DNA from: Mobula hypostoma
Taxonomy: Eukaryota
NCBI RefSeq assembly: GCF_963921235.1
Contig: NC_086101.1
Coordinates: 12,648,001 to 12,712,000, forward strand
Length of the DNA: 64,000 bases
Reading direction: 5' to 3'
Of this stretch, positions 29,748 to 49,700 are shown piece by piece (the stretch's first letter is position 1; every line of letters begins with the position of its first letter). A program made the position numbers and the translations under genes. The notes beneath the pieces are model-generated. The model searched no databases, was not told where the DNA came from, and saw only the letters and a list, made by a program, of their open reading frames with translations.

Positions 29748-30453
29748 TTAAGACACGTTTAAACAAAATGTACACGCCTAAGGATTTTAAAGATTTATCA
29801 GTTGTGACTAAACGAAACCGCTCTATCGAAATACTGTATTGGCAATGTGGACAATCTCGCCCTCTGCAAAGATTGAGGGACGAAATTGCAGGTAATGGTC
29901 GGAAATTTTCTGTCTCTAGTTAAGTAATTGCAGCCCATTGTAAATCTGTTACGAATCAATGTAACATAATATGAAAGCGGACCTGGATGAGGACACCAAT
30001 GAATTCAGTAGCCGATTAATTTCGTGCATGCCTGTCCACTATTTATAACATAATAAATATTATAAAATAACATCAAAACCGATATTTTTCAAATTCCATA
30101 ACAAATACGTTTTAAATCATGTCAGGTAAATAAAAATTACTCGGCAAACATGAGTGAATACCTTGCCCCGCTTTTTCTTCCGGTTATCGAGGGAACGGCA
30201 TGATTTGAGGTTCAATGGACCCTAAAGAAAACATTCGCGGGAAAAGCAAATAAAATTAAAGCATTTTGAAAGCATGATTTTTTATCAATTAACTCACTGA
30301 ACTAGTTTTTTAAATAGCATTTGGCCGTCGTGAATTTTCAGAAAATTGCATTGTTTGTCTTTGATCGGGCGCTGTTATTTGACTCCAGGAGTCGATGCTC
30401 GAGTACGTTATTACTCATACTGTAGGTATAGCCGCGTTTTGAACTGGATGGGT

Positions 30454-30469
30454 GGCTCTTAAAAGAGCC
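30454..30469 (-). terminator. Histone mRNA 3' stem-loop (H2B copy 1)
   Basis: Minus strand AAAC-GGCTCTTTTAAGAGCC-ACCCA. Confidence 0.95.
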
Positions 30470-30503
30470 GTTTGGCGATTTAATCGCATCTTTCAAGGGT
30501 AAT

Positions 30504-30914
30504 CTACTTGGAGCTGGTATATTTGGTGACGGCTTTCGTGCCTTCAGAGACGGCGTGTTTAGCCAGTTCCCCAGGAAGCAGAAGACGGACGGCGCTCTGG
30601 ACCTCTCGGGAGGAGATGGTCTGGCGACGGGTGTAATGCACCAGACGGGAAGCCTCGGACGCAATACGCTCAAAGATGTCGCTGACAAATGAGTGGATGA
30701 CACTCATGGCCTTGGAAGAAATACCGGTGTCTGGGTGAACCTGCTTCAGTACTTTGTAGATATAGATGCTGTAGCTCTCCTTCCTGCTCCTCCTGTGCTT
30801 CTTATCGCCTTTCCTGCTCATTTTCATAGCAGTCTTCTTAGAGCCCTTTTTCGAAACGGCGCCTTTACCTCCGCCTGCCGTGACGCTGGTAGTACCCGAA
30901 ACAGTAGTTGGCAT
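30504..30914 (-). CDS. Divergent histone H2B, copy 1 (136 aa)
   Basis: [27 protein letters not shown]...[26 protein letters not shown]; intronless; stem-loop and H2B-type promoter present. Confidence 0.95.
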
Positions 30915-30976
30915 TGTGTAACTCTTGCTGACTTACACACCAAAAATCAAGCAATACGCAATCGCCTGCTTCTCTC

Positions 30977-31050
30977 TTATATATACAGAGCTATGCAAAT
31001 AATCAAAGCACGATGCAAATGAAGGATGGCAGATTGTCCGTTCCGATTGG
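30977..31050 (-). promoter_or_regulatory. H2B promoter: TATA, two octamers, CCAAT
   Basis: Minus strand TATATATAA (30977-30985), ATTTGCAT (30993-31000, 31013-31020), CCAAT (31046-31050). Confidence 0.85.
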
Positions 31051-31912
31051 TTACTTTGTGCAAACCTCTGAACGGACGTGCTCTGGTGTCACTACTTCAC
31101 CCGCCCGATAGCGTTTGCTTTGCAAGAAATTCGGTGTGAAAGAATCTCAGGAGAGAGAGAGAGAAAAATTAAGGTAATGTTTAGGACGAAAATACAACCC
31201 CTGACCATCTTTACAATGAGTTAACATTACAAATAACAGAAATACTAACATTGGGAGATACTAACATTTCTCATGATTGGGGGATGAAAATGTTTTGTTT
31301 AAATCGATGGCCTTTTTCATGAATTGAGAATGTTTGGAGAGAAAATTGGGATAAGATGAGGAATAGTGAGAGGGCTGTGGGTGAGGGGAAAGAAGGGAGC
31401 AAAAAAAGGAGTAGTTAAGTCAAGAGAGATCAAACCAACAAAGGAGTATTTTCAGCATTTTCTGTTTTATTTCAGAATCTAGCAACTGCAATACTTTGTT
31501 TTACGATGAATTTTAATTAAATCTGCGTAATGGAAAGATACGACAGTAATCAATTCACAGTACTTAGACAGAAAATACAACAAAGGACAATATTTAATAA
31601 ATAAAAAATGTACATTGTCTTCTCTGTCTGCTTATCGCCCCGCTGGAGTTGACTACGGATATGGAATTATAAAGCAACGGCCCTTTGGCCAAACATGCCG
31701 ATACTGGCTTGTGATGGTGTGCTGCAATTTGTCATAGATGCTACTTTCCCTGCATTTTTTCCCTCTATTCAAATCCCTTTTGGAAGTTGCAATCAAACTC
31801 AGGTCATTTATCGCCTGAAGAGCCTCAACGTGTCTTATGATTCGGCCAGGTAGCTTCTGTGCAGAGGATACTGATGATGAATTCTGAAGAAGGGACATAT
31901 TGGAAATATTTA

Positions 31913-31991
31913 AAAACGCAAACACGAGGAAATCTGCAGATGCTGGAAATTCAAGCAACACACACACACAGCAGCATTTTGTGTGTGTTGC
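31913..31991. mobile_element. 79-bp Penelope-derived insertion present only in duplication unit 1
   Basis: 13-bp direct repeat TTGGAAATATTTA (31900-31912, 31992-32004); the paralogous site in unit 2 (~34213) is empty. Confidence 0.8.
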
Positions 31992-32810
31992 TTGGAAATA
32001 TTTAGTTAGTTAATCTCCGTCTGCGTCATTAACTCTCTAATCAATACAGACTAAGTGCTCTTTTAGACGGTCCCTGCTAAATTTGTGACAGTTCGCGTCA
32101 CTGCCTCTCCAACCAATACAGTTAAAGTTCTTCAGAAACCCCCTACCAAAATTAATGCAAGCTCAAAATATTGCGAAAGCTGTACTGGCAATATGGGCAA
32201 TCTTGCCCTCTGCAAAGATTGAGAAGGTCGAAATTGCAGGTACTGGTCGGAAATTTTCTTTCTCTAGTTAAGTAATTGCAGCCCATCGTAAATCTGTTAC
32301 GAATCAATGTAACATAATACGACAGCGGACCTGGATGAGGACACCAATGAATTCAGTAGCCGATTAATTTTGTGCATGCCTGTCCACTGCTATTTATAAC
32401 ATAATAAATATTATAAAATAATAAAATCAAAACCGATATTTTTCAAATTCCATACCAACAAATCCGTTTTAAATCATACGTCAGGTAAATAAAAATCACT
32501 CGGCAAACATGAGTGAATACCTTGCCCCGCTTTTTCTTCCGGTTATCGAGGGAACGGCATGATCTAAGTTGAGGTTCAATGGACCCTAAAGAAAACATTC
32601 GCGCGAAAAGCAAGGCATTTTGAAAGCATGCTTTTTATCTATTAACTGACGGAACTACATAGTTTTTAAAATAGCATTTGGCCGTCGTGAATTTTCAGAA
32701 AATTGCATTGTTTGTCTTTGATCGGGCGCTGTTATTTGACTCCAGGAGTCGATGCTCGAGTACGTTATTACTCATACTGTAGGTATAGCCGCTGTTTGGA
32801 CTGAATGAGT

Positions 32811-32826
32811 GGCTCTTAAAAGAGCC
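32811..32826 (-). terminator. Histone mRNA 3' stem-loop (H2B copy 2)
   Basis: GGCTCTTTTAAGAGCC on the minus strand. Confidence 0.95.
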
Positions 32827-32860
32827 GTTTGGCGATCTAATCGCATCTTTCAAGGGTAAG

Positions 32861-33271
32861 CTACTTGGAGCTGGTATATTTGGTGACGGCTTTCGTGCCT
32901 TCAGAGACGGCGTGTTTGGCCAGTTCCCCAGGAAGCAGAAGACGGACGGCGCTCTGGACCTCTCGGGAGGAGATGGTCTGGCGACGGGTGTAATGCGCCA
33001 GACGGGAAGCCTCGGACGCAATACGCTCGAAGATGTCGCTGACAAATGAGTGGATGACACTCATGGCCTTGGAAGAGATACCGGTGTCTGGGTGAACCTG
33101 CTTCAGTACTTTGTAGATATAGATGCTGTAGCTCTCCTTCCTGCTCCTCCTGCGTTTCCTACCGCCTTTCTTGCTCATTTTCATAGCAGTTTTCTTAGAG
33201 CCCTTTTTCAAAACGGCACCTTTACCTCCGACTGCCGTGACGCTGGTAGAACCCGAAACAGCAGTTGGCAT
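32861..33271 (-). CDS. Divergent histone H2B, copy 2 (136 aa)
   Basis: Intact ORF with stem-loop, TATA (33334-33342), distal octamer (33370-33377) and CCAAT (33403-33407); proximal octamer mutated. Confidence 0.95.
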
Positions 33272-34529
33272 TGTGTAACTCTTGCTGACTTACACACCAA
33301 AAATCAAGTAACACGCAATCGGCTGCTTCTCTCTTATATATACAGAGCTATGCAACTAATCAAAGCACGATGCAAATGAAGGATGGCAGATTGTCCGTTC
33401 CGATTGGTTACTTTGTGCAAACCTCTGAATGGACGTGCTCTGGTGTCACTACTTCACCCGCCCGATAGCGTTTGGGAATGCGAGAGCAAGAGAGAGAGGA
33501 AAAAACATTTTAAAATAATGTTTAGGACGAAAATACACCCCCTGACCGTCTTTACAGTAAGCTAACATTACAACTAAAAGAAATACTGACATTGGGAGAT
33601 GAAAACGCTTTGTTTAAATCGATGGCCTTTTACATGAATTGAGAATGTTTGGAGAGAAAACTGGGTTAAGATGAGGAATGGTGAGGGGGCTGTGGGTGAG
33701 GGGAAAGAAGGGAGCAAAAAAGGAGTAGTTAAGTCAGGAGAAATCAAACCAGCAAAAGAATATTTTCAGCATTTTCTGTTTTATTTCAGAATCTAGCAAC
33801 TGTAATACTTTGTTGTACGATGAATTTTAATTAAATCTGCGTAATGGAAAGATACGACAGTAACCAATTCACAGTGCTTAGACAGAAAATACAACAAAGG
33901 ACAATATTTAATAAATAAAAAATGTACATTGTCTTCTCTGTCTGCTTATCGCCCCGCTGGAGTTGACTACGGATATGGAATCATAAAGCAACGGCCCTTT
34001 GGCCAAACATGCCGATACTGGCTTGTGATGGTGTGCTGCAATTTGTCATAGATGCTAGTTTCCCTGCATTTTTTCCCTCTATTCAAATCCCTTTTGGAAG
34101 TTGCAATCAAACTCAGGTCATTTATCGCCTGAAGGGTATCAACGTGTCTTATGATTCGGCCAGGTAGCTTCTGTGCAGAGGACACTGATGATGAATTCTG
34201 AAGAAGGAACATATTGGAAATACTTAGTTAGTTAATCTCCTCCATCTGCGTCATTAACTCTCTAATCAATAGACTAACTGCTGCTTTAGACGATCCCAAC
34301 TAAATTTGTGACAGTTCGCGTCACTGCCTCTCCAACCAATACATTTTTATCAATTAACTCACTGAACTACAAACATCCAGTTTTTAAAATAAAGCATTTG
34401 GCCGTCGTGAATTTTCAGAAAATTGCATTGTTTGTCCTTGATCGGGCGCTGTCGTTTGACTCCAGGAGTCGATGCTTAAATATGTATTACTCATACTGTA
34501 GGTATAGCCGCGTTTTGGACTGGGTGAGT

Positions 34530-34545
34530 GGCTCTTAAAAGAGCC
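34530..34545 (-). terminator. Histone mRNA 3' stem-loop (H2B copy 3)
   Basis: GGCTCTTTTAAGAGCC on the minus strand. Confidence 0.9.
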
Positions 34546-34579
34546 GTTTGGCGATTTAATCGCATCTTTCAAGGGTAAT

Positions 34580-34962
34580 CTACTTGGAGCCTGTATATTT
34601 GGTGATGGTTTTCGTGCCTTCAGAGACGGCGTGTTTAGCCAGTTCCCCAGGAAGCAGAGGGCGGACGGCGCTCTGGACCTCTCGGGAGGAGATGGTCTGG
34701 CGACGGGTGTAATGCACCAGACGGGAAGCCTCGGACGCAATACGCTCGAAGATGTCGCTGACGAATGAAATACCAGTGTCTGGGTGAACCTGCTTCAGCA
34801 CTTTGTAGATATAGATGCTGTAGCTCTCCTTCCTGCTCCTCCTGTGCTTCTTATCGCCTTTCCTGCTCATTTCATAGCAGTTTTCTTAGAGCCCTTTTTC
34901 GAAACGGCGCCTTTACCTCCGCCTGCCGTAACACTGGTAGAACCCGAAACAGCAGTTGGCAT
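34580..34962 (-). pseudogene. Histone H2B pseudogene, copy 3
   Basis: 1-nt deletion near 34870 (frameshift), 9-codon deletion in the histone fold (GIS-FVSD), L>P in VRPLLPG, TATA box deleted. Confidence 0.9.
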
Positions 34963-36333
34963 TGCGTATATCTTGCTGACTTACACACCAAAAATCAAGC
35001 AATACTCAGTCCGCTGCTTCTCTCTACAGAGCTGTGCAAAAATCAAAGCACGATGCAAATGAAGGATGGCAGATTGTCCGTTCCGATTGGTTACTTTGTG
35101 CAAACCTCTGAACGGACGTGCTCTGGTGTCACTACTTCACCCGTCCGGTAGCGTTTGCTTTGCAAGAAATTCGGTGTGAAAGAATCTCAGGAGAGAGGGA
35201 GGGAGAGAAAGAGGGAGAGAGAGAGAGAGAGAGAGGGAGGGAGGGGGAGGGGGAGAGGGAGAGATCACTGCCTCTCTAACCGATACAGTTTAAATCCTTC
35301 AGAAACCCCCTACTAAAATTACTCCAAGCTCAAAATATTGCGAAAGCTGTGACTGGAAACATATCCGAGAATACTGTAAATATTAAAGTTGTTTAGGAAT
35401 ATTCAGGCTTTTCGGTAATCGATCTTAGGGTAATAAAAGTGATGTTGTTAGTAGATCTGCTGCCTCGTAGTTCTAGAGACCCAGGTTCAATCCTGGCCTT
35501 TGGAAATCGATGAGGATTTTATATATTCTTCGCTTCACTGCACGAGATCTCCCCCTCCCCCTCCCCCGGTGATCCTGTTTCCTCCAATGTGCCAAAGACA
35601 TTAGTACATTAATTGGTCACTGGAAATTGCCCTCGTCATAAGTAGTCGAAAGAATTGAAGGGAATTTAGAGCAAAGAGTGGAGAAAATCGTGAGATTGGT
35701 TTAGGATTAGTGTAAATTTGTGCTTGGTGGTTTGCATGAAAATGATGGATTCAAGAATCATCTCAATTTGTGCGACTCCTTAAACTGAACCATTAACGTC
35801 ACCAATTTATTAGGAACACGCACAAAATGCTGGAGGCGGCATCTATGGAAAAGAAGGTACAATACAACGTTTGGACCGAGACCCTTAGCTTCATTTTTAG
35901 AGCCATTTGATTGCCATTTTCATCGTATGAGGTTTGTCCCGTGAAATCTAGGCAGTTTGGGGTTGTACTTCTTAACGCTCAGATGAATGGGAAATAACCA
36001 TATCGAAATATACAATATCTTTCACAGGGTAGATGCTGAGTTATTACTTGTGGGAATCACGAAGTTTTCTGTGGCTGGGCATTTAATAGAGCTACGCACA
36101 ATCTTCAGCACAACGCTTCTCTGAAATCCTGAGGGTGGAGGCCAAATATTTAACTACATAAAGATCAGAATTAATTATAGTGAGCTTGCACAGAATATAG
36201 TGAATGGTGACGTAAGTTTGAGTAAACTGGGCATATTTATTTTGGTTTCGTATATTTTATTGCTTTAAATGTGCTTCTTCCTATAGAAATGTATCTGTAA
36301 CCCACAGGGCAATTTCTGTATGAAAGAGACAGT

Positions 36334-36349
36334 GGCTCTTAAAAGAGCC
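36334..36349 (-). terminator. Histone mRNA 3' stem-loop downstream of the H1 pseudogene
   Basis: AAAAC-GGCTCTTTTAAGAGCC-AC on the minus strand. Confidence 0.95.
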
Positions 36350-36359
36350 GTTTTGGCGT

Positions 36360-37057
36360 TCATTCTTGGATATGTTTCCACTTCGGAGCTTTGCTCTTCT
36401 CGGCCGTGTTGCCGACCATCAGAAGACGGGGCATTTTTAGACACCTCTCTGGCTGTTTACCCTTGGGAACTGTCACCTTGCCGGTTCGTCTTTTATGAGC
36501 GCCGGCCTTGGTTCATAAGCTTTACTCTGCGAAGCGCGTTCTTCCTCCAGGGCTTGCGCACCGCACCCTTAACTTTCGAGGTGGGCGCACCACGTTTTCG
36601 GGTCTGGAAGAACTTACCCGCCGCCCCTTTAACTACCTGGAGCTGCCGGTTGATCTTGAAAGAACCCGAGGCCCCCGTGCCAGCCGTTTGCACCAACATG
36701 CCATCAGCCACCAGGTTCCGAACCGTTTGATTCACCCGTGAATTGATGCGGGGCACATCGTAACCAGTGGCCGACAGCGCCTTCTTGACGGCGAGCAGGG
36801 AGACATCGTGGCGCTGTTTGGACAGCGTCCATGATGTGCCCGGCCACGGTCGACGGACTCCCTTGCCGGGACGTGGGCGAGTTCTTCTTTCGCTTTGCCT
36901 TGCTGCCTCGGGGCTGCTGACCCGCAGCCATTAGCAAAGGTGCGGGTGGCGCATCCGCAGAGCTCACAGACGCCACACCGACGCCCACTGGCTCCGGGCC
37001 GCCACTGAACCCGTCCGGCTGCGGCGGCCTCTTATCAGCCCTCAAAGCGGACGCCAT
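36360..37057 (-). pseudogene. Histone H1 (divergent), frameshifted
   Basis: Winged-helix split across frames: TVAGHIMDAV / KQRHDVSLLAVKKALSATGYDVPRINSRVNQTVRNLVADGMLVQTAGTGASGSFKIN; frameshift near 36820 and a probable second one near 36510. Confidence 0.85.
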
Positions 37058-41180: not shown

Positions 41181-44100
41181 AATAGGAATTGGACAGGACA
41201 ATACCTTATAGACAAATTCTGTACATCTGTTTTAAAGAAGAAGCAACTAGATGGCAAATGACCAAAGGTTAAAAAAAACGCTTGATGTTAAGCTTTATTT
41301 ATAGATTTATTTGTGATATTTACATCGAAACATGTGCAGCTGCGGGTAAAAAGGGTCCAGAGGATCATGAGAGACTCCAGCCACCTCAACCACAAACTGT
41401 TGCATCTGGCAAACGGTACCGCAGCATGAAGGCCAGGACACCTTCTATCACCAAGCCATCAGAATTATCAAAGCACAGTGAACTGATTGCGTATCCATCT
41501 GTACATTGTGTCTGACTGTACATACATGAATACGAAACAATCCTAGTGTTGGGCAATACCCTCCCACATTTCTCTTCCCTATTGCTTGTACGTTGTGACA
41601 GAGACACAACATGAAGATTTTTACTCCCTCGTCTTGTGAGACGGATGTAAGAAATAAAATGCTACCGCGTCGCCCTTGGGCCGGGACATCTGAACCCAAA
41701 GCAGACAGATCTTTAGCTGTCACTATAAGTGGAATGAATGCAAGCCTGATGTCCCCCAACAGATTATAAAGCGGTGAGATATCAGAGCATCATCAAGCCA
41801 CTCAACCCATTGAATCTGCTCTAACACTGAATCAACCCATTCTCCTCTCTATCCATGTAACCCTTAACCTCCTTACCAATGAAGGACCCATCAACCTCAG
41901 ACTTTAATAAACCCAACGTCTTCGCCTCTGGAGCCATCAATTCTATGATTCACCACGCTCTGTCTGAAGAAATCCCTGCTAGTTGCAATTCCAAAGGAAA
42001 CTTTTTGATTTTGGGGCTATGCCTTCTGATCCTAGACTTCTAGTAATGGAAACATTCTCTCCTCGTCCAGTCTATCCAGGCCTTTCAGTAATCGATAGAT
42101 TTCAAGGAGACTCCACTCTTCTTCTGAACACCATCCAATACAGGCCCAGGGTCATTAAACACTCCACATAGAACATGTTAAGCTTTTCATTTCCGTTTAC
42201 CTCCTTTGGACCCTCTTCAGGGACAATTCATCCTTCCTTAGAAAAGGGCCCAATTTCTAAAAATCTTATTTAAATGTGCTAACATATGTCATATGTTCAA
42301 AATTTAAAAAAAAACTTTTAAAAGAGACAAGGCACTTTGTCCACATTAAACTTCTAAATACATTTAAAGCAGCGCCAGGTTAGTTTTATTTGATTGAAAC
42401 AGACAACAACTAATTTAAATTAATAAAGCCCCTCATTCTTATATTGGAGAAAATGAAGTATCTGGGGGCGAGATTCGAGCACGGCCAGGCAGCACTTGGA
42501 GAAGGAGCATGCAGTCTCTATGGGCACGGGGTTAGGGGGAAGTTCCGTCAGCAATGGGCCCCCGCAAGCGCTTGAATGTCCTGAAATAGTATTTTTATTT
42601 TAACTAACAGATCTAACTAAGTGTGCGAGATATCACCGACGCTGCGAGGGATCGTTCGATGCGGAGAGCCATGATCACCCAAGCGTGTAACGCGCAGGGC
42701 ACATGAAGAAGAAGATCTTTATTTTAATTTGAAATCGTTGCTAGTTTTGTGACCCCCTATTACTGTATGTATTTTTATAAGTGAATTATCTTTTGTATGT
42801 TTGTAGAAAATACTCGTCTTTGGACCGCTCCGGATGCTCCCACATTCCAAAGACTTACTGCTAGGATTCGTGAGTTGTGGCGCTGGCAGCCTGGCGACAC
42901 TTGCGAGCTGCCCCAGCACAATCCTCGCTGTTATGATTTGACGGAAACGATTGCATTTCACTTTAAGTTTCGACCTACATTTGACAAATCAAGCTTTTTT
43001 TTAAGCTCCGTTCCCGTCTGCCTTTAATGGAGCCGCGATGAACCAACTCGAGCCGCCCGCAAGTTCAATCACGTCAGCGCTGGGGAGACCGATGCTTAAG
43101 TTGTTTATGGTTTTACGGTCGAAAGGCGAAAGCAGTTATGCATCAATGAATGGCTACAGCAAGACGTCACAAAACATCTTCCGTGACAATACACGCCTGA
43201 CGGCTCTGCAATGTGCCGCAGGTATCCAACAACTAAAGCGAATGTGTCAACATAAAGGAGCCTTCCCTGGACTCTGATTTGGACCGTGTCTGTATCGGAT
43301 CTCATCACTAACAAAATTTGACTGCATTCATGATATCCAAGACCAAATCCCGCCATTTTCCAACTCAGGTGGCCTGTTCATAAAAACTGCATCTAATTTC
43401 TCACTAAACGTTGATTATCTATTTCCTTCCGCAGATGCTGCTCAATCGGCGCGGCACTAAAGCAGTTTGTTTTTATTAACCGCCCCCAAGACTCTAGCAT
43501 CCACATCTCTTGTATATCCAGCTCATTTCTTCGTACGAGATACAAAATATTCGGGGACAAAACGCTTTGTTCTAACTTACTCGGTCATAGTGCAGATCAA
43601 ACGAAAGTCTAATGGAAGCAACTTTAATGTATGAATGTGGGTGTCTTCTGGATTTGATGAAACTTATTAACTGTTCGTCTTTCGTTACTGTATCTGCTGT
43701 CTCGTATGTCTCATGGTCTTTCCACGACTACGATTGTTCTTGGCAAATTTTTCTATGGGGGGGGGGAGGAACAGTACGACCACAATTCAGAATCTGCCCA
43801 TCTTATTTTAAATCAGCGACTCTTTCTTACTGGAAGAGTGTAGATGCAGCTGGGCACACACGGGTTAAAAAAAATCAATTTGAGAACAACGCGTCGTGTA
43901 TAATTAAACATGTCTAGAAAATTGTTAAATTCAACATAAACGAATCAGATTAGATTGAAATGCAGTGAAAACTTATGAAATTGTACATTTAATGTTTCAA
44001 CCTGAATCATATGAAGGCAGCAACACGCAAAAAACTGTTGGAGGAACAGGTCCGGCAGCAGCTGTGGAGGAAAATGGACAATGGACGTTTTGGGCCGAGA

Positions 44101-44609
44101 TCCTGATCGGCACGGTCTTGGCGTGAAACGTCGACTCCCCATTTCCCTCTACAGATGAGGCCTATATTGCTGAGTTACTCTAGCGTTTTGTGTGTTGCTC
44201 GAGTTTTCCAGCTTCTGCAGTCTCAAATCTTCATTACAAAGGTTGGTTCCAATTTCGGAAAGGAAAATTTCAGAGTTATTGTGAAGAGCTTTCATGGATT
44301 GAGTTTAAAACCTCTATTGGTTTATTCTTTATTCAATAAAAAATTAAAATCCCTTCAGTTGAAGCATTTCATAATAGTTCTGAATTTTCCTTTCCTTAAT
44401 TTGAACCTACTTTCGTAATGAAGACCCAAGCAGTAAAAGGGAAATTATAGTCACAGGAAACGTGCAGTAGAGATATAATTGGTAAGGTTACTGAGAAGCG
44501 ATAATTAGAAAGTTTGATAATTTATGTCTGCAAAGAGAAGGGAGAGGTGGAGTGAACCTTAATCATTTTTGTTAGGTGTTTCTAAACACAAGTAAACAAC
44601 TATACACGA

Positions 44610-44626
44610 TTTATTTTCTTTTTATT
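44610..44626 (-). terminator. Two AATAAA poly(A) signals downstream of the H1-like ORF
   Basis: TTTATT at 44610-44615 and 44621-44626 on the plus strand, ~80 nt past the stop; no canonical stem-loop nearby. Confidence 0.55.
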
Positions 44627-44703
44627 TGATCAAAAAAATCATTAGCACATATGTCTGTTACGTCAGGTTAACATAATATAAACTGTTTCAGCTCTTGTCT
44701 GAG

Positions 44704-45357
44704 TCATTGTGTTTGGATGGAGTCGGTTTCAGATCCAAATCTGTTGGGTTCGCGCTCTAATGGGCTCTTCGCAGACTTCCTGGGCTTTCTCGAGCCCCGG
44801 CGGCTCGCCAACACTTTCTTCACCCGGATGCCTTTCCAGCGGGTCGACTTTTTCACGGCGCCGTACTTTCTACGGTGCCTGCCCAGTCTCTTCACCCGCT
44901 GGCACCTCTTCCTGCCTGTTGTCCTCAGCCTTCGGGACTTCCTGGCCACCTTGGGGGTGGCTGCCGTCGTTTCCTCCGGACTGTTGCCGAGGCTGGCCGA
45001 GCCCGAGGCGTCACAGCCCACCGTTTGCTCCAGCGGTCCTTTGCTAGGCGGGCTGCGCACAGTTCGACTAACCCGCGAGTTACTGCGGGCCAAGTTATAG
45101 TCGCTGGGCGACAGCGCTTTCTTCATAGCGGCCACCGAGACCCGGCGGCGCTCCCTGGTGGATGCCACCGCCTTCATGATATGCTCGGCCACCGTACAGC
45201 CAAACTTCCTGTGCCGGTACTGCCTCCGCTTCTTTTTCACGGCCGCCGCAATGTCCAGCACCGCTGCCTCGTCGGAAGGAGACGGGACTGCAGGTGGTGG
45301 CGGGGCCGGGGCCGTCGCAGCAGAGACGTCGGTGCCCACCACTTCCGAATCTGCCAT
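44704..45357 (-). CDS. Arginine-rich histone H1-like protein (217 aa)
   Basis: Intact ORF; TVAEHIMKAVASTRERRRVSVAAMKKAL...NSRV...SKGPLEQTVGCDASGS aligns to the H1 globular domain; R/K-rich tail; CpG-rich upstream region. Confidence 0.85.
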   Translation of the reverse strand: MADSEVVGTDVSAATAPAPPPPAVPSPSDEAAVLDIAAAVKKKRRQYRHRKFGCTVAEHIMKAVASTRERRRVSVAAMKKALSPSDYNLARSNSRVSRTVRSPPSKGPLEQTVGCDASGSASLGNSPEETTAATPKVARKSRRLRTTGRKRCQRVKRLGRHRRKYGAVKKSTRWKGIRVKKVLASRRGSRKPRKSAKSPLEREPNRFGSETDSIQTQ

Positions 45358-45434
45358 TCAGTAGCCGCCCACTCGCGTTGCTTCCGCCCCGCAGCTGCGG
45401 CTCCAATGACGGCACCGCCCCGGCGGGGCGGCGG

Positions 45435-45510
45435 TTAAAGCGGCGGCGCGGACGCGGTAGACACAACTGGCCTCCCGGTACCGCCCGAAGCGGCGCGGTT
45501 GTGCTTTTTC
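45435..45510 (-). promoter_or_regulatory. H1-type promoter with variant boxes
   Basis: Order on the minus strand: AAAGCACA (AC/H1-box variant), GGGCGG, CCAGT (CCAAT variant), TTTAA (TATA variant); TGTGTTA further upstream at 45844-45850. Confidence 0.55.
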
Positions 45511-46529
45511 CTCTCCGAAAGTGGCTCGCGTTCAGCTCAAAATCGAGCACTCGGAAAGCCGGGCCTGTAGTATACTTCCCACCCTGCACAATTAGTCGCC
45601 TAAGCCATGATTTGGAGTTTAGAAACGCTCTGGTGTCTTTCCTAACACTCCATCATTGCGCCGTGACACCTCAAAGCAATAGGCTCCTCCCATTTTCCCG
45701 GTTAGAATGTCGCACCTGTTCGATACTTCGTCTCCTGTTAATCCTCAGACTTGCAGAGGAAGAGTTGAGACTCATATTCCACAGGGACCTATTGTTTTAA
45801 CATCGTATGCAACCGGGAAATCTCCTGCTAAGCATAGCCTCAGTAACACACCAACTTTGCGACATGAAAGCTGAGTAAATCGGAGGATCCTGCCGCAACC
45901 AAAGATATTTTGCTGTTTTCATGATAAGACCACCACCCCCAATCAATATTTTACTAATGGACGCCATAAGAGGTCACAACGGCCTGAACTAGGGCGAATC
46001 TCTCAACTCTTGTGATTCCCTCGCGATTGGAGAGTTCCACAACTTAGCTCGGGCATGGCAACTACCCTTTTAACCGAAAAGTCCTAAATTAACCTGATGA
46101 GTTGAAGATTCATTTAAGTCCAATAGCAACTGTGGTGTGGACATTATACGCACAAATCACAGCCTTTCATTCCAATGTTTCTCAAGTTTTCGACAAAGTA
46201 TCCACCTTCATCCCCAGATGGACATGTTGAAAATACCTGTTGCTGTCAGTAAGAACTTCTGAAGCACGTCATCAATACAGCCTTTTCGACGACAGTAGGG
46301 ACACTAGAAACAAAGATGGATCACGCACTTCCGATGAAGGTGGCAACTACTCGGATGGAAAGCAGGCAAGGAGCGGCCGGATTCCAAGTCCATACGCCGA
46401 AAAGTCCAGTGATGATGCCACTATACCACCGGGCGGCATAATTTACAAGGTACGCATGTTAACTCGAACTCAGCTCTTGAAAAAAAAAGACCCTTTCTAC
46501 GAATGGCATTTTTGCCTTATTTGTTATTT

Positions 46530-46775
46530 TAACTACCAAACGCCTTTGCCTAAACTTTAAAGCAGACACAAGCATTGCAATGACTGTTCTGCCTTTGGCA
46601 TGTTCGGTGGAGGTAACTGAACCCCAAAAACATTTTCGAAAAATAAAACTTTCAAGAAACCACGTTTCCTCATATATAAGGTCAGAACTATATCTAATTC
46701 CCTCGCGGCAAGCCAGACGCAGATGAGTAGGTAATTCAACAACTTTACGGTAGCATCTTTGCCTCTTACAGTCAT
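46530..46775 (-). pseudogene. Highly decayed histone H4 pseudogene
   Basis: [48 protein letters not shown] vs H4 [49 protein letters not shown]. Confidence 0.8.
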
Positions 46776-49700
46776 ACAAATAAAGTAACTGAATTCTGCA
46801 AAAAAAAAACACATCACACCGTCTCGATTTGATATCAATCTTCCGGACCTGGTTGAAGAACGTGAACGGCGGGGTGGGGAGGGGGTGTCAAAGGACTCGG
46901 CAACGCTATAGTTCGGAAACATTTGTGGTAAACAAACGACATGCACCTTCAAACAAGAGAAAATCCGCAGATGCCGGTCGACTGTACTTTTTTCCATAGA
47001 TGCTGCCTTGCCTGCTGAGTTCCTCCAGCATTTTGTGTGTGCTGAGTTGCTTTCCAGCTATGATTTGTTTAAGCTCAAAATAATGTTCAAGTAAAACGCG
47101 TAACTTCGTTATTTTTTCCGACTCACTTTGAACGACATCCACTTAACGTTTTTAAATGACTCTCAATAGGAAAATAACGAACCTTAGGGTTTTAGGGATG
47201 AAATTTAACACATCGTGGTTCTGATTTTTATTTATCCCCGTCTATTTTCTGTCCAACAACGCATTCTTCCTCGCTTAAAAATTACATCACGCTAGTTTTT
47301 ACATCTACGATAGCTTTTAAATTCGTTTAACGGGCTGAGAGGATCGTTTGAAATGAAAACAACTGGGCAAATCAATTATTGCTAATGTGGGTTTTGCCTT
47401 GGCAGATTTCTGGCCTTAAAACACGATCTATAACTTTATTTTTCACAGTTCGCTGCACTGTTTAATGCGCAAACCCACCCTTAAATTTAGGAAGATCGAT
47501 ATGACAAATACATTTGTGAAATAAATCACCAGTGAAACACAGAACTGAAATGTAACCACCATTGCTCCTGCACTGCGCTTTTGACATCATGCGATTAGGA
47601 GCTGAGTTAAGGTCAAAGATTAGAATGCAAGGTTAATGTATGAGGCCGGGCTATGAAGGTTAGAAGATGGGGAAATATAATAGCTGGATTTGGAATTAAA
47701 GTTAAGTTAGGCATTGGTTAAAGTTAGTGTTAAGAAGTTATAAAGTTGCAAGCTCCGAAGTCATTAGAATCCTTCAATAAATTAATTAATTAAATGAAAA
47801 TACACTCAAATTAACGGTTTTGTGACCAGATTCCTCAGATTGGAAATAAGATCAAACCTGAATGCACGTACTCTTTATTTTGTGGCGTATGGGTTGTCCA
47901 TCGAAAGGTAACGCCTCTGGTCCAGGGGCCTGCTGTGTCCATTCCGGGGCAGCTCACTCATTTTTGGTCCCCACCGGTCACTCAGCTCTCACCTGAAGCG
48001 TCAAGCACCTGTTTACACCCCGGTATACCGCTTCGACAGGCGAGCTAAACCAGGAGGATATCCGGTGGTCTCGTACCCGGTGAAAAAGTGGCAGACCTCT
48101 CCCAGCTCCGGCGAACTGGGTGGGTAAGATCTACAGTGCGATCCGACGGCCAGGAAAGCGGCACTGCATCGTTTCGTGGAGAACGAAGAGCATGACTAGG
48201 CACAGAAGACGTCATTGTCTTCGACTGCACCCAAGTTTGTGACGCTTCTCGGTACCACAGGACCCAAACTTCAAAGGTCTCAGAAAGGCAGCGTTCATTA
48301 TTAAGGACCTCCAGCACCCAGGGCAGCCCTTTTCTCACTGTTACCATCAGGTAGCAGGTACAGAAGCCTGAAGGCACACACTCAGCGATTCAGGAACAGC
48401 TTCTTCCCCTCTGCGATCCGATTCCTAAATGGACATTGAAGCTTTGGACACTACCTCACTTTTTAAAATATACAGTATTTCTGGTTTTGTACGTTTTAAA
48501 AAATTTATTCAATATACGTAATTGATTTACTTGTTTATTATTTTTTCTCTCTCTGCTAGATTATGTATAGCATTGAACTGCTGCTGCTAAGTTAACAAGT
48601 TTCACGTCGCATGCCGGTGATAACAAACTGATTAAAAACTCTCCCGCACTGGTTTCCTGTCATTGTCGGATATGATGGACTCTTAATTCAACTTCATGCA
48701 TCTGAAGTATTTTATTAATGCGTTGATTAGACAAAACAGTGAAAGGCCATGATTCTCAGAATGGCTACACATATCGTCTCGTAATTTTACAGCTTGTACT
48801 GCAAAAACCACTATAATTCTAAAGTGGTTCACGGTGAAGGGTCTTCACTGTTTATTTATTTCCATAGTTGCTGCCTTACCTGCTGAGTTCCGCCAGCACT
48901 TTGTGCACGTTGCCCACAGTTAAAAGATCGTTTGGCTAGTTTCTGAAGAATATTTCCTGAGCCAAGAATGGAATAAAAGTTGTTTAAAACCTATAGGTTT
49001 AGACAGATTTATTTTATGTGTTTGTTGTTACGATCAAATCTAAACTTCCGGTTGATAGGCATTCCCAGGCTAAACTATGGTGTTTCAACATTGCAGAGAT
49101 AAATTTGAGATTTCAAATAAAAAGCCAATTGTGCCCAAGCAACATTCTAAATTCAGTCGGACTAAAGGTACTGGAATTGGGTTACCGGTTTTCCGTCTAT
49201 TTAAATAAAAATTCTGGAAAGAAGACTTGTTACAGAATTAGATGCACCGTAGCTTCAACAAAATAAAAAGACAAGGCGCGGAAGGACGCCAAATAATAAA
49301 CTAACACGTGCCAATGAATTATTGATTATTTTTGCTGTTTCTGTATTGTGTTAAACCTAGACCATTTTCCAATGAGGTCTTAATGCAAACCACCTTTTGT
49401 TTTCTCCGATTAGTCCGGTGTGTCGCTGTGAGTATTGCAGAGGATCGTCATCGGTGTGCTTTAAGCCCATTGGTTAAAATGCTGTCTTGTGATTGGCTGT
49501 AACCCGAGGGTATATTTTCAATCCCTCTATGCAAATGAGGGTTGCGGTTTTATTACAAACGGTTTTTGTCGGTCGTTGGCCAGTATGAATTCACAAACCT
49601 GGCCATGAGATCAAATGAAATCGTCAAAGCGCTCAGCCATTTGAATGACCTTAAATGACATTACTATATCCTAAATACTGGTTACTAGGACAATTTCAAA

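Follow-up and report, generated by a model that had tools for sequence, protein, structure and literature searches.

The germ-line and replacement H1 variants of vertebrates are polyadenylated, and their origin from stem-loop genes is seldom visible in sequence. H1T2 (H1-7/H1fnt) and HILS1 (H1-9) are H1-derived, intron-less and replication-independent, with arginine-enriched tails and divergent globular domains. H1.0 and avian H5 are polyadenylated and intron-less, H5 also being enriched in arginine, and the PL-I sperm nuclear basic proteins of invertebrates and some fishes are H1-related proteins that combine a winged helix with arginine-rich tails. H1T2 and HILS1 are expressed specifically in spermatids (PMC7788777, PMC6069787), and the PL-I and other sperm nuclear basic proteins have been treated in general terms elsewhere (PMC12216123). 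The present analysis concerns an arginine-rich H1 variant gene on the minus strand of a 64,000-nucleotide stretch of the Mobula hypostoma genome (contig NC_086101.1, positions 12,648,001 to 12,712,000; hereafter the window, from whose first letter all unprefixed coordinates are counted). The original prediction, made from the letters of the window, had described this gene as an H1-like gene that appears to have traded its stem-loop for poly(A), and as a possible intermediate between H1 and protamine-like proteins.

The evidence presented below makes it very probable that the gene is a functional, replication-independent and polyadenylated arginine-rich H1 variant, which belongs to an old family of cartilaginous fishes and is derived from a stem-loop H1 gene.

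The gene, its family and its transcript

The gene encodes a strongly basic protein in which arginine outnumbers lysine: its 217 residues include 31 Arg against 21 Lys (R/(R+K) of 0.60), as well as 3 Cys, and its net charge is +35. The tripartite layout of H1 is present, consisting of a Pro/Ala-rich N-terminal tail (residues 1-35), a globular domain and a basic C-terminal tail. The globular domain matches Linker_histone (Pfam PF00538) over residues 56-122 with a score of 27.1 bits, the cut-off being 22.4. The computed composition is identical to the hand count of the original prediction, the arginine-rich tail peptide that it quoted is found in the protein, and its proposal of an arginine-rich gene of H1 derivation with an intact open reading frame (ORF) agrees with the Pfam match, the open frame and the composition.

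A protein search identified 11 orthologous proteins from 10 elasmobranch species, all annotated merely as "histone H1-like". Identity to the Mobula protein is 78% in Hypanus sabinus, 56% in Pristis pectinata and 48% in Heptranchias perlo, and the further orthologues come from Rhinoraja, Leucoraja, Heterodontus, two Chiloscyllium species, Pristiophorus and Narcine. Linker_histone is matched by 11 of 11 family members. Disruption of the ORF in close relatives had been named as an outcome that would speak against the original prediction; the ORF is instead conserved across the orthologues. Furthermore, when a profile of the globular part was searched against 1.8 billion representative sequences, family members scored 147-177 bits and a Callorhinchus milii protein annotated as "histone H1.3" was added to the family at 123 bits, with ordinary single-domain H1s reaching at most 92 bits. 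Among the sequences inspected, the matches at 102-141 bits include gene models that fuse two or three H1 copies; multi-copy fusions of this kind aside, no bony-vertebrate protein fell within the score range of the family.

The family groups as one clade, with Callorhinchus among its members, in a tree built from globular domains (support 97/90). This clade lies apart from the two H1.0 genes, the H1x-like and H1oo-like genes and the canonical clusters of the same genome, as well as from the other variant H1s on the contig. The phylogenetic comparison proposed in the original prediction therefore separates the family from H1.0, H1x-like and H1oo-like genes, while orthology to a named vertebrate variant was not found. 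Against solved structures, the family profile scores 80 bits with chicken GH1 and 77 bits with H1.4, and 24-29 bits with H1.0 and H5.

The family members also share a syntenic locus. A CALHM-like gene and an H2B variant adjoin the orthologue in Pristis, Leucoraja, Rhinoraja, Heptranchias and Chiloscyllium; the CALHM-like gene of Pristis, Leucoraja and Rhinoraja lies 6-9 kb downstream on the opposite strand, and that of Chiloscyllium is nearby. The relative placement seen in the window recurs for the H2B variant (93% identity in Pristis) and, in Heptranchias, for a second H1 variant. The gene is best explained as the ray copy of a single-copy, intron-less H1 variant conserved across the cartilaginous fishes, with members in sharks, rays and a chimaera. 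The family was previously present in databases only as automatic "histone H1-like" or "H1.3" annotation, and full-text literature searches found no paper describing it.

The arginine content also characterizes the family as a whole. R/(R+K) is 0.45-0.66 in all orthologues, compared with 58 Lys and 7 Arg in a canonical H1 of the same genome, and arginine enrichment is likewise found in H1 variants of the contig that do bear a stem-loop. Arginine-richness is an old trait of the whole family and not a recent shift in the Mobula gene. The cysteine of the FGC motif is nearly invariant in the family, and the remaining cysteines are variable.

Other linker histone genes of the same genome were also recorded. 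A paralogue of 178 residues lies about 12 kb past the end of the window (L006, G000:C12:12724341-12724796); its N-terminal globular half is family-like (KKKSSYR, then SAMAEQILEAVAATKERQ), it has no recognisable wing or stem-loop, and an AATAAA stands 150 nt after its stop codon. The H1oo-like, H1x-like and two H1.0-like genes lie at C58:12199503-12199730, C58:73223159-73223368 and C45:101272128-101367365. Linker-histone domain matches in this genome number at least 40, of which most belong to the canonical clusters of C45, C80 and C82.

Transcription was assessed by comparing positions 42600-47400 with the contigs of four sequencing runs, two of the window species and two of a second species, whose run type ("RNA?") is a guess. 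The contigs amount to 85-170 million letters per run, as against a genome of 3.5 Gb. In all four runs the depth is zero at the unique flanks 43083-43404, 44371-44531, 45820-45980 and 47108-47400, and in the same runs the gene body is covered at a depth of 7-20. A 732-nt contig of one window-species run (X1) corresponds to 44605-45336 with zero differences, and contigs of the other (X2) span 44605-45611 except for a break at 45090-45124. Since the covered part is collinear with the genome, the gene contains no intron. The second species, which is about 2% divergent, also holds the transcript. A run search limited to "PolyA" libraries listed no run.

In both X1 and X2, coverage ends at position 44605, which lies 16 nt past the first of two AATAAA hexamers and 5 nt past the second, and the depth beyond is zero. 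These contig ends bear out the poly(A) ending of the original prediction and suggest that the mRNA is cleaved and polyadenylated at about 44605.

The 3′ end and the promoter region

No histone stem-loop was found near the ORF, either by Rfam at the gathering threshold across the window or at E≤10 in 44500-44900. Rfam did detect four good histone stem-loops in the window, at 30430-36354, and all of them stand behind neighbouring genes: two intact divergent H2B genes, one broken H2B gene and one frameshifted H1-like gene. The absence of a stem-loop and the presence of two downstream AATAAA hexamers, both noted in the original prediction, were thus reproduced.

Comparison with the orthologues reveals where the stem-loop once lay. 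In Heptranchias, a stem-loop (GGCTCT-TCCT-AGAGCC) follows the stop codon by about 24 nt (Rfam Histone3, 20.2 bits, E of 0.005). In Chiloscyllium punctatum, a perfect GGCTCT-TCTC-AGAGCC lies within the last seven codons (Rfam, 22.4 bits, E of 0.0008), and the C-terminal peptides of Heterodontus (NGSSLSH) and C. plagiosum (NGSSQSL) imply that their stem-loops are also inside the ORF. Both Heptranchias and C. punctatum possess an AATAAA or ATTAAA 40-115 nt beyond the stem-loop, and the downstream hexamer region of Heptranchias aligns with the poly(A)-signal region of batoids. For Callorhinchus, Rfam found no stem-loop after the stop codon, and a candidate decayed remnant noted there by eye was not accepted as one. 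What corresponds to the shark stem-loop in batoids has become part of a C-terminal coding extension, and pairing of the stem is lost. When the last 70 nt of the Mobula gene were aligned locally with the stem-loop region of Heptranchias, 3 of 2000 shuffles did equally well; with the Chiloscyllium region, 54 of 2000 did so. The exchange of stem-loop for poly(A) proposed in the original prediction is therefore supported by shark orthologues that keep the stem-loop, by its absence in Mobula and by RNA-like contigs that end past the AATAAA pair.

In the C. punctatum arrangement (L051:1736-1780) the stop codon begins 3 nt after the stem, and cleavage at the usual place would end the mRNA at or beside the stop codon.

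The second element of the replication-dependent 3′ end, the purine-rich histone downstream element (HDE), has probably left a trace in Mobula. Canonical H1 genes of the same genome carry an HDE, with the core AAGAGCTG, at 15-18 nt beyond the stem-loop. In the Mobula gene AAGAGCTGA, identical to that HDE core, starts 8 nt after the stop codon, without a stem-loop partner; in other batoids it is coding. The site is the ancestral batoid stop region, and the last Pristis codons read D-K-S-stop. The bare 9-mer AAGAGCTGA has 2 matches in the window where about 1 is expected and is no rarer than chance predicts, so that the motif count was rejected as evidence for an HDE and the meaning of the motif rests on its position and homology. 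The HDE-like motif of the original prediction thus stands as to its presence just after the stop codon, where its position fits a relic of the old processing signal, but the 9-mer is not significant by count. Judged by position and alignment, it is most likely a real relic of that signal.

The location of this motif outside the Mobula ORF results from a lineage-specific frameshift. Past the frameshift site, NPTDLDLKPTPSKHNDSDKS and then a stop codon can still be read in the +1 frame, in agreement with the C-terminus of Hypanus. The frameshift replaced the last ~17 residues, and the ORF now ends 16 nt earlier, at a TGA that corresponds in position to the shark stop codon. The second species shows no indel relative to the window and hence carries the same frameshift. 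An assembly error was considered as the cause and ruled out: same-species RNA-like contigs are identical to the window, and those of the sister species contain no indel. Beyond the batoid stop codon, about 90 nt of 3′ untranslated region (3′UTR) are kept in Mobula, Pristis, Leucoraja and Rhinoraja. The batoid hexamers are AATAAA twice, except that the second in Rhinoraja is ATTAAA.

Upstream of the gene, the positions relative to the ATG are -149 for AAGCACAA and -83 for CTTTAA; in a canonical H1 of the same genome they are -149 for AAACACA and -84 for CTTTAA. The H1-type promoter boxes of the original prediction are accordingly present as H1-box-like and TATA-like motifs with canonical spacing. 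The inverted CCAAT at 45407-45403 was rejected as a promoter box, as it is not conserved in the orthologues.

Coordinates of the H1 variant gene and its features within the window
Feature	Coordinates	Strand	Basis
Arg-rich H1 variant coding sequence, intron-less, 217 aa plus TGA stop (44704-44706)	44704..45357	minus	ORF listing, composition, collinear RNA-like contigs 44605-45611, same start Met in orthologues
Pfam Linker_histone match, residues 56-122; helix 3 and wing (C-terminal half) with Pro, Glu and Asp replacements	44992..45192	minus	27.1 bits; alignment
Most conserved family block, codons 41-80: KKKRR motif, FGCTVAE.IMKAVA, ERR motif, SVAAMKK (basic lead-in and helices 1-2)	45118..45237	minus	invariant columns in 11-species alignment; no nonsynonymous change in codons 15-112 between two close species
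Arg-rich C-terminal tail, residues 125-199	44761..44985	minus	composition; family-wide R/(R+K) 0.45-0.66; tail pairwise dN/dS mostly 0.5-0.8
Approximate frameshift site relative to other batoids; +1 frame downstream still reads ancestral peptide NPTDLDLKPTPSKHNDSDKS, then stop	44757..44760	minus	alternative-frame translation compared with Hypanus and Pristis C-termini
Decayed histone stem-loop relic inside last codons	44709..44724	minus	aligns to Heptranchias and Chiloscyllium stem-loops; no Rfam match
HDE-like motif AAGAGCTGA, probable relic; supplies stop codon of other batoid orthologues	44696-44688	minus	position; alignment; same 9-mer as canonical H1 HDE core
3′UTR, ~99 nt, conserved among batoids, two AATAAA (44626-44621, 44615-44610)	44605..44703	minus	3′UTR alignments; RNA-like contigs end at 44605
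Conserved proximal upstream region: H1-box-like AAGCACAA (45506-45499), ~34-nt block shared from shark to ray (45467-45434), TATA-like CTTTAAC ending the block	45434..45506	minus	five-species upstream alignment
Upstream stretch with weaker RNA-like contigs; may be long 5′UTR, upstream start or other transcription	45358..45712	strandless contigs	45279-45611 (X2, depth 8.3), 45323-45712 (X1, depth 4.3)

Constraint on the globular domain and the alternative readings

The globular domain had been described as eroded, and the Pfam scores of the family agree with this description. Pristis, Heptranchias, Rhinoraja and Leucoraja score 61-62 bits, Narcine 54, Heterodontus 48, Hypanus 37.5, Pristiophorus 27.5 and the two Chiloscyllium species 27.2 and 26.1; at 27.1 bits, compared with 61-62 in the best-preserved orthologues, the Mobula domain is clearly eroded. 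Several replacements are common to Mobula and Hypanus in the alignment, namely Pro for Val after helix 3, Glu for Val in the first wing strand, and Asp or Glu for Gly. By the Pfam scores, erosion of helix 3 and the wing arose in at least three lineages with the ORF kept open. Conversely, a nearly invariant block (KKKRR motif, Y/F-R-H, FGCTVAE.IMKAVA, ERR motif, SVAAMKK) extends through the whole family. The conserved portion of the variant is therefore the N-terminal half of the globular domain, and not the DNA-binding wing.

The pattern of substitution follows the same division. Between two close species, 12 differences were listed, 9 nonsynonymous and 3 synonymous. At least 9 nonsynonymous changes of 12 would be found with P = 0.0085 at an omega of 0.2 and with P = 0.21 at an omega of 0.5; strong constraint over the whole gene is thus rejected, whereas the weaker constraint is not. 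All 9 nonsynonymous changes fall in codons 113-202 and none in codons 15-112, for which the chance is about 0.003 given near-equal site numbers per half. Moreover, about 4 nonsynonymous changes would be expected in codons 15-112 at the synonymous rate, and the Poisson probability of finding 0 is about 0.015. Across the family, the pairwise ratio of nonsynonymous to synonymous substitution rates (dN/dS) is ~0.5 when the gene is taken as a whole; it is 0.16-0.47 in the N-terminal globular half, and in the tail most values lie at 0.5-0.8. On these counts the N-terminal globular half is under purifying selection, with the helix-3/wing half and the tail evolving fast, and so uneven a pattern of constraint argues against a dead gene.

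For a functional gene, the following course would account for these observations. The ancestor was very probably a replication-dependent H1 gene of the stem-loop type, and the mRNA would now be made by cleavage and polyadenylation, by which expression would be uncoupled from S phase. Binding to DNA or chromatin would depend mainly on the arginine-rich tail, together with the N-terminal portion of the globular domain, which is basic and conserved; the winged helix of stingrays would be weakened, and with it, probably, the classical wing contacts. The protein would act in a specialised chromatin state. Male germ cells are the likeliest setting, at somewhat less than even probability: the shift to arginine, the fast-evolving tail, polyadenylation and the existence of separate H1.0, H1x and H1oo-type genes point in this direction, by analogy with H1T2 and HILS1. 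More tentative still is a fuller version, in which the family would be a spermatid-stage, protamine-like linker histone kept since before the split between chimaeras and the shark-ray lineage, its living members preserving a stepwise conversion to a polyadenylated germ-line gene. In such a series, a stem-loop at the 3′ end would have been swallowed by the ORF and an AATAAA added in sharks; in rays the stem-loop would have decayed into codons and the old HDE would have come to supply the stop codon, before a frameshift in Mobula returned the end of the ORF to the old stop. The step toward protamine-like proteins raised in the original prediction is an analogy and not a finding; no link to the protamines known from dogfish was found, and none was looked for.

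Several observations weigh against a functional, polyadenylated variant and have to be set beside those above. The overall ratio of proportional nonsynonymous to synonymous differences (pN/pS) between the two close species is about 1, and the terminal branch leading to the window lineage measures 0.17 compared with 0.014 for Hypanus. The long branch, a Pfam score barely over the cut-off and the frameshifted C-terminus would also fit relaxed constraint. From shallow alignments, AlphaFold2 (AF2) predicts helices and no wing for the Mobula protein, at a mean confidence (pLDDT) of 53.9, and three helices with no confident wing for the Pristis globular domain, at a pLDDT of 64, levels too low to decide on the survival of the winged helix. 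As for the transcript, no poly(A) tail is directly seen at the contig ends, which constitute indirect evidence; the RNA nature of the runs is guessed, and the contigs carry no strand, tissue or library label. In addition, RNA-like coverage continues beyond the TATA-like box of H1 type, to 250-355 nt before the ATG.

These points bear most directly on the possibility that the gene is a transcribed relic, functional elsewhere in the family but turning into a pseudogene in this stingray lineage as its winged helix and C-terminus decay under relaxed constraint. Such a relic would explain the 27.1 Pfam bits against ~62 in Pristis and skates, the Pro, Glu and Asp at core positions of helix 3 and the wing, the replacement of a conserved ~17-residue C-terminus by frameshift, the pN/pS of ~1 and a terminal branch 12 times the length of that of Hypanus; neighbouring H1-like and H2B copies in the window are, moreover, already broken. 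Yet the ORF is intact in Mobula, in the ~2%-divergent relative and in Hypanus, the remaining indels relative to the orthologues are in frame, the transcript is present in four runs, and 9 of 9 nonsynonymous changes avoid codons 15-112 in favour of the C-terminal half. Much of the erosion is also common to Hypanus and hence old, with the ORF maintained afterwards, and Chiloscyllium and Pristiophorus independently underwent comparable erosion while keeping the ORF intact. Decay into a pseudogene is thus unlikely. A smaller chance still attaches to the suggestion that the contigs are not mRNA of the gene but genomic carry-over, antisense or read-through, and that the gene may be silent. While the guessed run type, the strandless contigs and the weak contigs upstream at 45992-46686 would permit this, 85-170 million letters per run fall far short of a 3.5-Gb genome, the unique flanks have zero depth in four runs in which the gene body reaches 7-20, and two runs end alike, 16 nt past an AATAAA that batoids conserve.

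If the gene is functional, it could nevertheless serve outside the male germ line, as a replacement variant of differentiated cells resembling H1.0 or H5, or in the oocyte or early embryo; among the functional readings this is a possible but minority outcome. Avian H5 is generally known to be both arginine-enriched and polyadenylated, and the presence of the transcript in at least four samples of one study and in samples of the second species could mean broad expression, in runs whose records carry no tissue label. However, the runs were listed at four per study and chosen for holding the transcript, so that breadth of expression cannot be read from them. The genome already has H1.0 (two copies), H1x-like and H1oo-like genes apart from this one, and the family profile reaches 76-80 bits on somatic or H1t-type globular domains compared with 24-29 on H1.0 and H5. 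A tail dN/dS of 0.5-0.8 is, as general and indirect knowledge, more typical of reproductive proteins.

The reading of the gene as a functional, polyadenylated variant derived from a stem-loop gene carries two consequences. In the orthologues of one gene, the former stem-loop and HDE can be followed through several stages of decay next to a poly(A) signal that is conserved, and the switch of histone 3′ signals thereby becomes directly testable between sharks and rays. Should the gene prove testis-specific, it would constitute an independent case of Lys-to-Arg evolution of H1 toward sperm chromatin proteins.

Neighbouring histone genes and comparison with known systems

A second H1-like gene lies on the minus strand at 36310-37057. 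It possesses an intact Rfam stem-loop (36 bits) and carries a frameshift between globular helix 1 and helix 2; its Heptranchias counterpart (L017:17589-18284) is intact and encodes 231 residues with an arginine-rich tail. Also on the minus strand, 30430-35000 contains two intact divergent H2B copies (136 aa, with an extended N-terminal tail) and a broken third, with a canonical stem-loop after each. The counterparts of this divergent H2B variant at the syntenic position share 93% identity with it in Pristis and 88% in Heptranchias. On the other side of the H1 variant gene, low-depth RNA-like contigs of the window species only were found at 45992-46333 and 46375-46686 (X1) and at 46267-46541 (X2), for which divergent transcription or background is possible. 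Further along, ~65 nt at 46977-47041 show a k-mer depth of ~100,000 and occur in more than 120 contigs of each of the four runs, as a very abundant dispersed transcript repeat that matches no Rfam family at the gathering threshold.

Among the known systems, replication-dependent somatic H1 (H1.1-H1.5) and H1t provide the closest globular profile, and the spacing of the upstream motifs and the stem-loops of the shark orthologues are also shared with them. The Mobula gene differs from these in that neither it nor the other batoid orthologues possess a stem-loop, that arginine exceeds lysine (31 to 21), and that it ends at a poly(A) signal. With H1.0 and H5 it has in common the absence of introns and the poly(A) signal, and with H5 its arginine enrichment, but it belongs to a different clade, its profile reaches merely 24-29 bits on them, and the genome holds H1.0 copies of its own. 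In comparison with PL-I, the Mobula protein is still H1-like in size and charge (217 aa, net +35). The gene resembles H1T2 and HILS1 in being intron-less and arginine-rich, with an eroded globular domain and an AATAAA downstream. Orthology to these two variants was not compared directly, and no mammalian variant falls within the score range of the family profile. Unlike H1T2 and HILS1, the family resides inside a histone cluster and bears the relics of a stem-loop and, probably, of an HDE.

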